From the NCBI GenBank assembly GCA_009103225.1, contig RHPI01003369.1, positions 1,640,017 through 1,704,016 of the forward strand: DNA of 64,000 nucleotides. Direction: 5' to 3'. The stretch is from Chlorokybus atmophyticus (lineage: Eukaryota > Plantae > Mesostigma and Chlorokybus algae). A program made the translations under genes and the position numbers. Positions 35,724 to 50,700 of the stretch are shown here, in pieces (position 1 is the stretch's first letter; the number at the start of each line of letters is the position of its first letter). A model generated the notes under the pieces. It was not told where the DNA came from. It saw only the letters and a program-made list of their open reading frames with translations, and searched no databases.

Positions 35724-36416
35724 GGACCATGAATGGTCCGTACCTCTGGACCGGGATTTTCCCCTGCTAAGTGAAATTGGTGGACCATATATGGTCGGAC
35801 TGTCAATGACAGTCAGACCATGCATGGTCCAAACCTCACGTGAACGGTCCCATATTTTTTTGGGGTCGCACCATGTATGGTGACCTGTTTGTATGAGTTT
35901 GCAAGGACCATGTATGGTGCAATGCCCCCTGGCGCAGAAGACCAGGCATGGTTTGTTACTTCCACATGTCTGGTGATCGACAGTCGCACCATGCACGGTC
36001 CATGAATACGGACCGGAAGTCTTTGTTTTAACTGACATATTTCAGACCATGCATGGTGCGCTGCCCTCCTGGCTCAGTGGACCATTTATGGTGCCAGTCT
36101 GATCGACATTCGCACCATGCACGGTCCATGGATACGGACTTTGTTGTGCATATGTGGTCCACAAGCGGTACCATGCATGGTCCTAACAGACAACGCACCA
36201 TACATGGTCTGATTGACAGTCGCACCATGCATGGTCTATCATAATGTCACATCCATTGAAGCCATGCATGGTCCACAAGCGGCACCATGTCTGGTCCTAA
36301 CAGACAACGCACCACATGGTCTGATTGACAGTCGCACCATGCATGGTCTGTCATGATGTCACAGCCATTGAATCCATGCATGGTCTTAGCATTGGTGCCT
36401 GCACCGTGCCCGGTGC
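35724..36416. repeat. Array of about 18 palindromic (g)ACCATGCATGGT(c) units with variable spacers
   Basis: Copies at about 35724, 35783, 35816, 35869, 35907, 35941, 35988, 36046, 36081, 36114, 36170, 36197, 36224, 36261, 36284, 36311, 36336, 36373, 36401. Includes a ~113-bp tandem duplication (about 36156-36268 and 36269-36380). Confidence 0.92.
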
Positions 36417-36779
36417 ATACAATCGGACACGCATGCAATTCACAGAAATGTTGTAATGGACTGTTAAACGACAGCCCATCAGTGTCAATCCAGTGAGACT
36501 GTAGCTACAGTCTCCTACATGCACTTCAAGCTGCGGTTACAGGAGGTAACAGGAGCAGCTAACAACATCAGTCTCTTGTGTTGCCAGCACCTTCGCCTGG
36601 AAGCCAGACTTGTGCTCTCCCTGGTTGATTCAGCCCCAATGTGAAGACACCCGCGACAGCCTTGCTCAACATCATCTCTTGCAAACACTCAGCGAGTGCT
36701 TGTTAAGCTCTGCACAACAAATGTACTGTCACGTGCTTACACAAACAGTAACTTGACCATAGCACAGGAAACCACCCAC

Positions 36780-47845: not shown

Positions 47846-48643
47846 CTTGTCGCTCCTGCCTTCCTTGCAGTTGACACCCAAGGCTCTGCTACTAACAAGC
47901 TACCGTAGTGTAGAACTACTAATGCACACAAGCTAGTCTCACACTCTTCAAGCGTAGTGTGGGCCCATAACCTGTTGAAGGACTAGCATGCACATGTAGC
48001 TGAGGCAAGCATAGACAGACAGAGCTACCGCCACCAAAGCATACACAAGTCACATCACATTCATCTATTACAAGTTGTCCGCTGGTTCTTATACCAGCCA
48101 TTCACACACACGTCTACGTTTGCAAGCACTGCGTAAGCTATACTCAGCCCTTTGACGCGCTCTAAGCTGCGTTGTCTTCCTTACAACCAAAGCTTTTCAA
48201 CAAGCTCTTACACGCCTCATATGAGTAAGTATACGCGGAGATACCAAGCAGTTAGTAAGGCTCTAGTCTGGAGTCCGGAGTCTGGTCCGACGATGCCATC
48301 TTGATAAGTCCGGACTCAGTGCTCGTCCTTACGACCTTCTACTCCTGTGTGGAGGGTCGATGCTGATCGTATGTAGGAATGACTCTCAACAGATCCTGGG
48401 GTACATCTAAACCTTCTTGGTGTACATAATCTTTGTATAGTACAAGCGTGTTAATGCTTAAGATGAACATCAGTGTTTTTATGCCTTCTTTCAGTAATGA
48501 CCACTCACAACAAGCACAAATGAGCACATGAGCACAATTAACAGCCGCATGGACTGTAAGTGACACGTATTGCCTTGTTGCAGGCTGTCAACCACTCACA
48601 ACATGAAACCACACATGAGCACAATTGACAGCCGCAACGACAG

Positions 48644-50700
48644 TCACCTTGACAGCCGCATGGACTGTTGCCAAAAATCGTTATGCGTACCTGCCTCGTG
48701 CTCTCCTGCCTTGTAGTACATGACATGTCTGTCATAGAACATGCGCACCACCTCAGTTGTTGGCTGCTCTTGCCATCTGCCTTGATCAACTTGCTGCCAG
48801 TTCAGCTTCCTCTTGACCGCAATGGGTGACACCTTCTGGTTGCGACAGTCTTTATTGACCACCCACCGCGCCAGGCCTTGGCGGGCACTCGCTGGTCTAG
48901 GAGCAGGCTTCAGGTAGTCAACCAACATGTTGCCTTCATCGTCAACTTGGGGCTGTCGAACAAGGACGATCCATGGCGGAGGATCATCAGATGCAGGTAC
49001 TGGTGGGTCAGTGGGCACGCGAAAGTCAAAGACCAACTTCTTCTCTTCCTCATGTCTTACAAGCAGCACATCCCCGGTTTTAGGCCATACGGGGAGAGGT
49101 ATATCAGCTGCTAGCAATCGCAGCTCTGGGTTGCTGAAGTCGTAAGCCAGCATGTAGGGGAGCAGCCTTGATCTCTCCGTCAGCATCCACATCTTGCGCA
49201 GAAGCTGCTGCCCTCGAACAAGAATGTAGGGTTCCTCCAACGTGCGCACATGCAGTGCACCAGAGTCCGCGTCCATATATTGATTGCCAGCAGCATCTTT
49301 TCGCAGACTGTACATGTGGACGGCAATGTACACATTGCACTCTGTGTGGAAGAACATGAAGATTTTGCTGACAATGGCAGGCCTGCTTCCATCAAGCATC
49401 ACAGCATCCTTGCAGTCGCGCCTGTGTGAGAGTGCGCACGTGTGTGTGTGTGTGTGTGTGTGTGTGTGTGTGTGTGTGTGTGTGAGAGAGAGAGAGAGAG
49501 AGAGAGAGAGAGAGAGAGAGAGAGAGAGAGAGAGAGAGAGAGAGAGAGAGAGAGAGAGAGAGAGTGTGCAAACAGTGATTGCTGTGACAGTCGTCGACAG
49601 TCTGCGACTGTCAATGCCAACATTGACAGTCTGTGTGACTGCCAATGCGGTATGGACAGTCGAGACTGTGCAATGGACAGCATGAAGTGGACATCTCTAC
49701 GGATGTCAATGCCAGCACGTACCTGTATACCAGGCCGTCCCTCATGTAGGCTTTGTAGTCACGCACTGTCCGCCACGACTTGGTGTGGATGGCAATGTTC
49801 TCTTGTGTGCAGATGCGTCCAAACAAGGCGTCGTTCCCTACGTACTGAATGCTGCCTCGTCCAATCAATATGCCTTTCTCTTTGATGTGCTGAGAGTGTG
49901 CCAAGGTGGGATATGCTTCCACAAGAGCCCATATCTCCTCTGCGTGTCTGATTGTAGCCACCTCATACCAGGTGGACCCGTTGAATTCTGTTTTACTGAT
50001 TGCTGACAGTGCATTGACGACTCTGTGGTGGAGCAGCAGGCCTGACCTCTGATCATCACGCATGACGCCAAAGAGTCGCACAAACCATCTCTTGACAGAT
50101 CGCTTCATGAAGCTGATCTCGTAGTCTTTACTGTTGGATGGGGTGTTGACATACAGCTTCACAGAGCGCTCAAAGGCGTAGCACCAGAACACATCATGGT
50201 GGCCATGTCAACGGATGTTGTCAAGCAGGTAGCAAGTTCCCGCAATGTGCTCCAGAATCTTCTTGTTAGTGCCAAAGCAGATCTCACTGTTTACCTTCTA
50301 GTATCTGAGCAATGCATCAGCGAGCTCCAGACGGCCGGAATCCCAACCCAAGCGGCGCGAGATGTCAAAGAACAAGCGAAATATCATGTGGAGGCACATG
50401 ACGAGGTCTCTCCTTTCTTCGCTTAGCAGCTTGTGAAAAACATAAGGCACAGCAAATTGCACAAAGAGCTGGTGCTCCTGCGCCTTCCACCATCCAAGGC
50501 GACTGCTGAGGCCATGCGGCCAGCGGTTGCCATGCCTCAACTCCCTGGGCCGTGTGTTCCTCATCACAGTTAGCCGACTGTCAATCTCAGCCTTGCTGAC
50601 CTGCTCGTCGCCACCATCCATCAGAGTGCAGTGCAGTGCACTCAGAAAGATCAGGAGGACATCCACTGTTGTGCCTTTGCTAACGATACAGTAGTGCTCT
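48644..50700 (-). pseudogene. CACTA/EnSpm (CMC)-type transposase, C-terminal part, decayed, one intron (49422-49722)
   Basis: One frame reads RPREL...LGWWKAQEHQLFVQFAVPYVFHKLL...LELADALLRY*KVNSEICFG...LLDNIR*HGHHDVFWCYAFERSVKL. This matches the CMC transposase pattern WKAsE..lf...lp..l....L..A..LL..f....e.lyG....hL.d.Ir.hGp...fWcf.FER. Stops at 50298 (TAG) and 50208 (TGA); the N-terminal catalytic region was not found. Confidence 0.72.
49441..49564. repeat. Compound microsatellite (TG)22(AG)40 in the transposase intron
   Basis: Read directly from the sequence. Confidence 0.97.

Follow-up and report, generated by a model that had tools for sequence, protein, structure and literature searches.

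The motif-dense island in the 64,000-nucleotide window (the whole stretch of DNA that was analysed) is best explained as a dead, right-truncated copy of a Tnp2/CACTA-like transposon of about 11 kb, not counting a copia element nested in it. We further propose that VTTGACAGYC, reiterated along this copy, is a family-specific cis-motif, most likely a set of sites for a protein encoded by the family itself, and we give this reading as a whole a probability of about 0.5. The motif is highly enriched, coincides with the element fragment, is depleted in coding-like DNA and has in part multiplied by local duplication.

Enrichment and form of the motif

The first-pass annotation had counted by hand about 33 copies of the heptamer TTGACAG/CTGTCAA in about 10 kb of non-copia DNA and four to five copies in the first 32 kb. 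Computed counts agree closely with these figures: 34 copies in the 10.2 kb of island that remain after subtraction of the copia element (44527-48391) and the Ns (40735-41685), five in the first 32 kb and three in the last 12 kb. The whole window holds 46 copies, against 13.9 +/- 3.5 expected from dinucleotide shuffles (largest 24), and 36 of the 46 fall within 35800-50584. The excess also stands against the composition-matched background on which the annotation had staked its claim, since the 34 island copies compare with 3.0 under a first-order Markov model of the island (largest 8) and 5.0 under a third-order model. TTGACAGTC was observed 20 times against 0.14 expected; the maximum copy number of any 9-mer in the island simulations was 7, and the top 9-mers of the other 10 kb windows in this stretch reach 3-8 copies. 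TTGACAGYC occurs 32 times in the whole window (1.9 expected). Of these, 29 lie in the island, against 0.4 when the expectation is scaled from the 46.6 kb of flanks, one in the copia element and two elsewhere. Enrichment over composition-matched and flank-based expectation thus ranges from 11-fold for the 7-mer to more than 70-fold for the 9-mer. That it reflects mere chance or base composition has a practically negligible probability: the observed counts were approached in none of 100 window shuffles and none of 200 island simulations, so the computation refutes this reading and left nothing in its favour.

The full motif is VTTGACAGYC, nine to ten bases long. The heptamer first taken as the motif is indeed enriched, but the informative part is a near-palindromic core, GAC(A/T)GTC or GACAGCC, with TT preferred on its 5' side. 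Perfect and one-mismatch TTGACAGYC sites in the island number 29 and 20, respectively, and occur in both orientations (perfect sites: 11 on the plus strand, 18 on the minus strand). The TGACAG core is present in 48 copies in the island, with TT before it and Y-C after it, and the centre of the motif is a symmetric CHG site (CAG/CTG). One-mismatch variants show an excess of about 12 at positions 1-3 versus about 1.5 in the core, which, to judge from the sequences, points to a degenerate recognition site and not to a perfect repeat that decayed uniformly. The core holds seven variants, compared with 5.5 expected from background and about 5 more from 2% decay, and these numbers would fit either the presence or the absence of selection on the motif since insertion.

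The island as a probable transposon fragment

The island and its major parts are as follows.

35798-50584, no strand: motif-dense island, split by Ns (40735-41685) and by the nested copia element (44527-48391)
35725-36385, no strand: left-edge array, about 17 copies of a 14 bp palindrome, GACCATGCATGGTC, with at most 3 mismatches
36817-39042, minus strand: two coding-like frames (36817-37260 and 38650-39042), no known relatives or domains
40136-40732, plus strand: reading frame with one perfect site at 40374
41688-41936, plus strand: C-terminal half of a SET-domain frame (PF00856, 7e-8), the remainder lying within the N gap
42322-44526, plus strand: coiled-coil, proline-rich frames (42322-42549, 42680-43258, 43803-44339 and 44206-44529), no known domains
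44527-48391, minus strand: nested copia LTR retrotransposon, internally deleted, LTRs at 44527-44951 and 47973-48391 (95.9% identical)
48647-50711, minus strand: Tnp2/CACTA-like transposase pseudogene, C-terminal two thirds

The motif-dense stretch coincides with one element fragment. At the left edge, motif density begins at the terminal-type palindrome array (about 660 bp), which is interleaved with five to six motif copies (e.g., TGATTGACAGTCGCACCATGCATGGTC, twice) and contains a 112 bp repeat present twice. At the right edge, the last site lies at 50576-84 and the transposase homology ends at about 50627-50711, with no matches beyond. Site density is alike on either side of the copia element (2.9 and 2.6 per kb), and TTGACAGYC falls to 0.04 per kb in the flanks. 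Because the motif starts and stops with the fragment, and the copia element (one perfect site in 3.9 kb, and thus outside the motif system) and both flanks stay at background, the counts support a tie of the motif to the mobile-element unit, not to the region or to host composition. Since the copia element is nested in it, the host element predates that insertion, which cuts the coiled-coil frames at 44527.

The ends of the element are less clear. Reiterated subterminal motifs, as used to recognise CACTA elements, are present at the left edge in the form of the palindromic 14-mers and TTGACAGYC-like sites, and the array is a candidate for the subterminal repeat region of the element. Inspection of 35690-35730 revealed no CACTA-type terminus; no 13 bp CACTA terminal inverted repeats were found, and no inverted repeat joins both island edges. 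A 91-nt inverted repeat (35010/52215) was rejected as a terminal inverted repeat because its ends are poorly defined and a further copy lies at 50983. Repeats of about 110 bp at 35000-35100, 50983-51098 and 52220-52336 belong to a small dispersed family and have no sharp ends. The right end of the element appears to be absent. Terminal inverted repeats and target site duplications were not found, and we infer that all 15 kb belong to a single element.

Although the first-pass annotation spoke of island genes, and reading frames are present, the best-supported gene is the broken transposase. Its first frame (50711-49614) contains two in-frame stops, TAG (50300-50298) and TGA (50210-50208), and is followed by an intron of about 300 bp and a second frame (49390-48647); the N-terminal residues (about 250, the catalytic part) are absent from the window. 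The pseudogene aligns to the relative P0029 straight across both stops (E 4e-34). Compared with P0029, both stops are C-to-T type transitions (TGG to TAG, CGA to TGA), which suggests that the element was probably methylated. By its sequence the copy is dead, a fossil, and therefore would regulate nothing at this locus now. Relatives of the transposase carry Transposase_21/tnp2 (PF02992) upstream of the matched part (P0021, 3e-6; P0026, 2e-5; P0029, 0.034), with scores below the Pfam cut-off and E < 0.01 in 2 of 18 members, and no Pfam family matched the window's own pieces, which lack the N-terminal part. On this sequence evidence, the pseudogene is akin to a divergent Tnp2/CACTA-like family. 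A TnpA-type second product (Transposase_24/TNP1) had no Pfam match in about 20 island frame pieces, and neither a MURA transposase nor a VANC protein was detected in the island.

The frame at 40136-40732 may be the N-terminal part of the SET-domain frame. Motif clusters lie between and beside the frames 36817-37260 and 38650-39042, and none lies inside them. A single-sequence AlphaFold model of reading frame a was unusable (pLDDT 42). Rfam and tRNA scans of the window gave no matches. A host gene in the window, for NADPH-P450 reductase, has its best identities to land plants (57-60%) and Volvox (58%), which places the host in the green lineage.

Searches for further copies returned none. A homologous-protein search with transposase pieces of 193 and 260 aa gave no matches, and none of ten island and copia reading frames was present in the protein collection by exact look-up. 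The left-array pattern matched no viral contigs and 30 metagenome contigs; the latter were rejected as unrelated CATGCATG-containing repeats because TTGACAG was enriched in none of the 30. A viral origin was likewise discarded, no viral relatives being found for frames a and d or the transposase piece. Among loci of distant transposase relatives, L001, L033 and L034 showed no dispersed motif of their own above Markov simulations, and at a fern locus (L032) the sole repeat of this sort was a tandem array with a unit of 1.09 kb, located upstream of its gene. In a literature search, matches to the motif string were confined to primers and oligonucleotides.

Arrangement of the sites

The sites are not evenly spread. 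Density is 4.2 per kb in probable non-coding DNA versus 1.4 per kb in probable coding DNA (P = 0.006, coding called by composition), and 7 of the 29 perfect sites, about a quarter, are in coding-like DNA. The claim that the motif saturates introns and exons therefore holds insofar as sites occur in both, but probable non-coding DNA carries about three times as many per kb. Clusters are found in the transposase intron, at the transposase 3' end and between reading frames. Within the transposase coding part, a perfect motif at 50576 reads EIDSRL (AIDGAV in P0029), and another at 48649 overlaps the last codons. The principal clusters are listed below.

37296-37376, no strand: four perfect sites, including GACTGTCAA-CACCA-TTGACAGTC, directly upstream of probable exon a
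38397-38542, minus strand: two perfect sites within a 137 bp local duplication (GGCAAGGACTGTCAACGGCAAGACAGCTC)
39205-39471, minus strand: non-coding-like DNA with three perfect sites, of which two belong to a duplicate spaced by 122 bp (CGGCTGTCAA)
41942-41977, minus strand: 13 bp tandem array, GCAGACTGTCAAT x 3, directly past the stop of the SET-domain frame
43624-43740, no strand: two perfect and two one-mismatch sites in the inverted repeat 43648-43762 (40 bp arms)
44140-44432, no strand: three perfect sites in coding-like coiled-coil frames (EEVDSL, AVNAETVNAL), two of them in a 15 bp tandem duplication
48583-48657, no strand: three perfect sites at and slightly past the stop of the transposase pseudogene
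49584-49661, no strand: intron of the transposase pseudogene, with seven motif copies, two of them perfect, beside a (GT)n(GA)n microsatellite

Local duplication accounts for part of this clustering. At least seven site pairs or triplets lie inside local duplications of 12-137 bp, and the tandem units carrying sites measure 13, 15, 112, 122 and 137 bp. Collapsing local duplicates leaves about 16 distinct clusters whose flanks are unrelated; an apparent cluster periodicity of about 1 kb was not significant after this step (P = 0.43). The inverted pairs pointed out by the annotation, GACTGTCAATGACAGTC at 35798 and the pair at 37296 listed above, are both there, as are its tandem arrays at 41942-41977, 48625-48657 and 49584-49631. 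Roughly half of all sites stand alone or point the same way as their neighbours.

Of five clusters folded, three are far more stable than their shuffled versions. The region 49575-49690 is a single long hairpin (-53.6 kcal/mol, z -6.9), 35785-35830 folds at z -6.0 and 48570-48670 forms a hairpin with z -3.2; the other two clusters give z -1.8 and +0.3. Inverted repeats with arms of 30-43 bp lie at 42254-42315 and 43648-43762.

Possible roles of the motif

If the sites are read by a family-encoded protein, the reader may be a TnpA- or VANC-like regulator supplied by intact family members, or the missing N-terminal DNA-binding part of the transposase. With its near-palindromic core and many inverted pairs, the motif suggests a protein that would bind as a dimer. 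A lone site would be too short to be unique in the genome. Clustered at 3-4 per kb, where the flanks have 0.04 per kb, the sites would together turn the entire element body into a high-avidity target, through which the protein could locate its own element copies. Once bound, it might drive expression, oppose silencing or recruit a chromatin enzyme, possibly the element's SET-domain protein. New sites would arise by point change and small tandem duplications, and would survive chiefly where coding constraint is missing. The self-recognition code put forward in the first-pass annotation fits the element-bound motif and, by analogy, the precedent-like layout, but no recognisable DNA-binding domain was found in the island frames (Pfam, PDB). 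As a long shot, the element might carry its own chromatin writer: the SET methyltransferase, brought by a partner protein reading VTTGACAGYC, or reading it through a domain in the N gap, would set the element's own histone methylation along its full length. Such an epigenetic system would be self-addressed and differ from VANC, and its code would coincide exactly with cytosines targeted by plant-type CHG methylation.

The motif could instead have been gathered as sites for a host transcription factor, either a TALE KNOX/BELL pair or TGAC readers such as WRKY or bZIP proteins, for stage-specific expression, e.g., in the zygote. We consider this unlikely. TGACAG, which the core includes, is the classical MEIS/KNOX half-site, and [G/C]ATTGACAG occurs at 13 of the 34 sites and TGATTGACAG, which we take to be the PBX-MEIS composite, at two. 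KN1 sites have (G/C)T after TGACAG, whereas Y-C is most conserved at this place in the island. Zygote genes in algae are driven via a GSP1/GSM1-dependent element, and the YGAC submotif is common to it and the island motif, but this element, ZYRE, is a different sequence (PMC4889651). Moreover, promoter elements are normally not spread across an 11 kb gene body, its introns and 3' ends in both orientations, and just two TTGACAGYC sites lie in the 46.6 kb of host DNA, which includes several genes. The proposed TALE hijack thus retains the six-base core and is otherwise weak: the flanks differ, ZYRE shares at most GAC/TGAC and the island has no homeodomain signature.

Two further readings dispense with a sequence-specific reader. 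A near-palindromic motif may build hairpins or cruciforms in DNA or transcripts, yielding hairpin small RNAs against the family or structures in recombination or replication, so that its sequence would matter only via self-complementarity. The three well-folding clusters, which fit a structural or a small-RNA role equally well, and the long-armed inverted repeats agree with this, and non-coding tandem-repeat regions of VANDAL elements are also RdDM targets (PMC10398659). However, any near-palindromic array folds on itself, so that the folding may be incidental. Two of the five clusters fold no better than shuffles, the isolated or directly oriented half of the sites does not fit, and pure structure leaves unexplained the reuse of one exact 7-9-mer at about 16 separate places; this reading is distinctly unlikely. 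It is more doubtful still that the sites are the functionless trace of a micro- or minisatellite seed spread by slippage, unequal exchange and gene conversion. Several sites demonstrably come from local duplication, and the element is dead and was probably methylated, as its two C-to-T type stops would have it. Yet about 16 clusters keep unrelated flanks after duplicates are collapsed, and known neutral processes do not produce one 9-mer repeatedly, in both orientations, amid unrelated sequence. One site also lies in frame within a conserved transposase segment, that of EIDSRL, and variation is restricted to the three 5' bases. If the motif were nevertheless such a fossil, it would be a mere curiosity of one repeat family.

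Comparison with known systems

To our knowledge, very few transposons have been described as carrying a dense private address code for their own regulator; the main examples are VANDAL/VANC and, with its subterminal repeats, En/Spm. Extended to the present case, the principle would cover a CACTA-like element beyond flowering plants, with the code over the whole body and not only at the ends. It would be relevant to the distinction of self from host by mobile elements and to their escape from, or control of, silencing, and a short motif together with a candidate protein set would make it directly testable.

In Arabidopsis VANDAL21 (Hiun), binding by VANC21 and loss of methylation have been demonstrated; the 9-base motif that VANC21 binds is enriched in that family alone, motif density decides binding, and the targets grow via tandem-repeat formation (PMC5735166). 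The island likewise has a 9-base motif rich in one element and rare elsewhere, located mainly in non-coding DNA (introns and upstream regions in VANDAL21) and multiplied by tandem repeats (PMC5735166). By analogy, specificity would come from high density, not from a single site. Unlike the Mutator-like VANDAL21, the island has a Tnp2/CACTA-like transposase and no detected VANC-like protein, and about a quarter of its sites are in coding-like DNA. VANC21 motifs also keep one orientation, whereas the island has both, with inverted pairs and a near-palindromic core.

With CACTA elements of the En/Spm type, the island shares a large size (10-20 kb in that group), a transposase probably of the tnp2 type, and short reiterated motifs in direct and inverted orientation with a dense array at the element end (PMC2613891). 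In those elements TNPA binds the reiterated subterminal motifs, which diverge fast between families, and TnpA-like proteins are poorly conserved (PMC2613891), so that the missing Pfam match in the island carries little weight. CACTA motifs are, however, limited to a few hundred bases per end, whereas in the island TTGACAGYC extends through the entire body (about 3 per kb) and the terminal array consists of another motif (PMC2613891). A terminal inverted repeat, a 3 bp target duplication and a TnpA homologue were not found in the island, and the catalytic part of the transposase is missing in this copy. TALE (MEIS/KNOX-BELL) sites have the TGACAG or TGAC core in common with the island motif, some copies of which read TGATTGACAG. 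Chlamydomonas ZYRE, in contrast, is CGTGACGTGAC-like and promoter-proximal, and the island sites extend across an 11 kb transposon body with a different flank preference (PMC4889651). The annotation's likening of the layout to VANDAL and Spm TnpA is supported by the clusters in the intron, at the 3' end and between genes, by the small tandem duplications and by the inverted pairs (PMC5735166, PMC2613891). The arrangement is most likely of a known kind, here in an unusual whole-element form.

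Motif enrichment and definition

In the window, the heptamer TTGACAG/CTGTCAA occurs 46 times, against 13.9 ± 3.5 (maximum 24) in dinucleotide-preserving shuffles. The motif-dense island at 35800-50584 holds 36 of these copies, and 5 lie in the first 32 kb, where the first-pass annotation had reported about 4-5. Without its N gap and the nested copia retrotransposon, the island comprises 10.2 kb of sequence with 34 copies, whereas 3.0 (maximum 8) are expected from a first-order and 5.0 from a third-order Markov model of the island. The enrichment claimed in that annotation is thus borne out by computed counts, and it is real and strong; chance as its source is refuted by the shuffles and the island simulations. 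The 9-mer TTGACAGTC is found 20 times against 0.14 expected in island simulations, in which no 9-mer exceeded 7 copies; the top 9-mer of other 10 kb windows reaches 3-8. TTGACAGYC is found 32 times in the window (1.9 expected), namely 29 times in the island (the rate in the 46.6 kb of flanks predicts 0.4), once in the copia and twice elsewhere.

An unbiased contrast of island and flanks gave GACAGTC/GACTGTC as the top k-mer (33 copies vs 2 in flanks), and the position table reads V-T-T-G-A-C-A-G-Y-C, frequently followed by G/C and then C. The core GAC(A/T)GTC is a 7-base palindrome centred on A/T; GACSGTC never occurs, and GACAGCC (n=15) is a second accepted form. One-mismatch variants exceed expectation (21 vs 6.6), with almost the whole excess at the three 5' bases and the core spared, a pattern typical of a degenerate recognition site and not of uniform decay of a repeat. 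Beyond about 12 bases from the sites the sequence shows no kinship between them, so that these are stand-alone short motifs rather than parts of a longer dispersed repeat.

The element and its edges

Features of the island (coordinates in the window)
35725-36385: palindrome array, 660 bp, in which the 14 bp palindrome GACCATGCATGGTC is repeated ~17 times with up to 3 mismatches
40735-41685: N gap inside the island
44527-44951 and 47973-48391: LTRs of the copia, 95.9% identical
49390-48647, minus strand: continuing transposase frame, by eye like the C-termini of relatives
between 50711-49614 and 49390-48647, minus strand: transposase intron, ~300 bp, holding seven copies of the motif and a (GT)n(GA)n microsatellite
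50711-49614, minus strand: transposase reading frame, single, with two in-frame stops
50300-50298 (TAG) and 50210-50208 (TGA), minus strand: the in-frame stops

The right edge of the island is the cut-off point of a Tnp2/CACTA-like transposase pseudogene. Its 198-residue piece has 27 relatives among 1.84 billion representative proteins (best E 1.4e-12); they comprise hypothetical proteins from Adiantum nelumboides, a fern, together with unnamed ones from Logan and ENA contigs. Three longer relatives match Pfam Transposase_21 (tnp2) upstream of the part matched by the island piece, with E values of 3e-6, 2e-5 and 0.034, none of which reaches the threshold that Pfam itself sets. By tblastn, residues 250-600 of P0029, a longer relative, align to 50627-49722 through both stops (E 4e-34); residues 1-250 have no match in 50.6-56 kb. 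Compared by eye, the stops stand opposite W and R of P0029, and their origins would fit TGG -> TAG and CGA -> TGA, both C-to-T type transitions. Such changes would have struck a CHG and a CG site, which is what a methylated, silenced element should show. Within the intron, a perfect (GT)22 then (GA)40 run (49440-49564) adjoins the densest motif cluster.

At the left edge, GACCATGCATGGTC in array form is absent from the rest of the window, includes the RY-like CATGCATG and is interspersed with copies of TTGACAGTC. The array is probably the subterminal repeat region of the element, and GACCATGCATGGTC may be the true TnpA-type site. Immediately outside it, the leftmost motif-like site, TTGACGTCAA (35712-35721), reproduces the motif minus its central A and forms a perfect palindrome of 10 bp. 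A plus-strand reading frame with VRQGCPLALALV (35479-35700) abuts this edge; by eye it resembles a non-LTR reverse-transcriptase motif, and Pfam gave no match for it.

Motif density is equal (2.9 and 2.6 per kb) to either side of the copia, and at background within it and in both flanks; hence 35.7-50.7 kb is read as a single old, right-truncated DNA transposon, into which the copia was inserted later. Since element ends (TIR, TSD) were not found at the island edges, its status as one unit rests on the motif, both edge features and the absence of the motif from copia and flanks. A ~110 bp repeat without crisp ends occurs in three copies (76-90% identical) at 35000-35100 (-), 50983-51098 (+) and 52220-52336 (+), two of which flank the island in inverted orientation; these could be TIRs bounding some larger unit, or else a MITE-like family unconnected with it.

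Between the island edges lies a SET domain (Pfam 7e-8) of which the C-terminal half is sequenced, the remainder falling in the N gap; among PDB entries it is no more than weakly similar to SUV39H2, SET1 and ASH1L. The island also has plus-strand coiled-coil and proline-rich reading frames and two minus-strand coding-like frames, for which neither relatives nor domains were found. The copia is only 3.9 kb long; its RVT_2 match ends at profile position 152/244 and the RNase H part is not seen, and thus it is internally deleted. It has no clean 5 bp target duplication (CGCAG vs GATCC).

Judged by its P450 reductase (57-60% identity to land plants, 58% to Volvox), the host belongs to the green lineage. 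Elsewhere in the window, a direct repeat of 64 bp with 84% identity between its copies (34380-34443 and 34816-34879) has a tRNA-like GGTTCGATTCC box after the first copy; ARAGORN found no tRNA, and the repeats are possibly SINE fragments. GCACATGC occurs 28 times in the window (12 expected), with 13 copies clustered at 56.4-60.9 kb, some ~30 bp apart (57723-57800, 59163-59222).

Site arrangement and its explanation

The sites form ~16 clusters without convincing periodicity (P=0.43, clusters), and the inverted pairs and tandem triplets named at first pass were all found. Coding DNA was called by homology and by the GC1 > GC2 < GC3 pattern common to host exons, copia and transposase. Perfect sites are depleted in probable coding DNA, which makes up 48.5% of the island and holds 7 of the 29 (1.4 per kb vs 4.2 elsewhere, P=0.006); homology-supported coding DNA alone has 2 sites in its 1983 bp (P=0.06). 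Coding density is still ~35 times background, and one in-frame site lies within a conserved transposase segment (EIDSRL in the island, AIDGAV in P0029).

We favour, at a probability of about 0.5, the reading that VTTGACAGYC is a cis-motif peculiar to this transposon family, reiterated as sites for a sequence-specific protein from intact members. Such members would make a protein that recognises the sites, and specificity would come from their high local density, unattainable with one short site. The data establish the enrichment, its coincidence with the element fragment, the depletion in coding DNA, the gain of sites through duplication and the kinship of the transposase; that a protein binds, which one it is and what it does there are inferred. 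The 'self-recognition code' suggested at first pass is, unproven as it is, the most economical reading. That annotation also suggested hijacking of a TALE (KNOX/BELL) programme. That the sites serve a host factor, for instance a TALE pair, is unlikely: the TGACAG core by itself would suit such a factor, but the motif flanks differ from TALE sites and the ZYRE of Chlamydomonas has another sequence (PMC4889651), so that the case for TALE is weak.

Self-complementarity of the core lets some clusters fold into long hairpins, at 49575-49690 (-53.6 kcal/mol, z -6.9), 35785-35830 (z -6.0) and 48570-48670 (z -3.2); the remaining two of five clusters tested show no hairpin excess (z -1.8 and +0.3). A structural or small-RNA role for these hairpins is quite unlikely as the explanation. 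The sites have grown in number by local duplication, from which at least seven pairs or triplets derive (a 13 bp unit three times, 15 bp twice, a 24 bp unit, 112 bp twice, and pairs at 122 bp and 137 bp spacing). That they spread neutrally through slippage and conversion is improbable.

Comparison with known systems

The arrangement is known here from a single dead copy; protein searches, exact look-up, a metagenome scan and viral scans found nothing related to a second one. Three loci of distant transposase relatives (L001, L033 and L034; 35-38% G+C) lack a dispersed motif of their own, so that the motif is family-specific at most and not shared by the transposase clade. At the fern locus (L032), the sole repeat feature is a tandem array upstream of the transposase-like gene.

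Array at the fern locus
4000-8600, contig JAKNSL020007561.1, Adiantum nelumboides: higher-order tandem array, period ~1.09 kb

In this array AATAGAATAG and AATAGGGTAT are abundant and share one orientation, so that a distant member of the family, too, has a region resembling subterminal repeats.

The favoured reading has two precedents. TNPA acts on subterminal repeats of CACTA elements (PMC2613891). The 9-base VANC21 motif YAGTATTAY is enriched in VANDAL21 only, mostly in non-coding sequence, grows via tandem repeats and works by density (PMC5735166). In contrast to both systems, the island motif is spread over the whole body of the element in both orientations, has a near-palindromic core and is carried by a Tnp2-like element.
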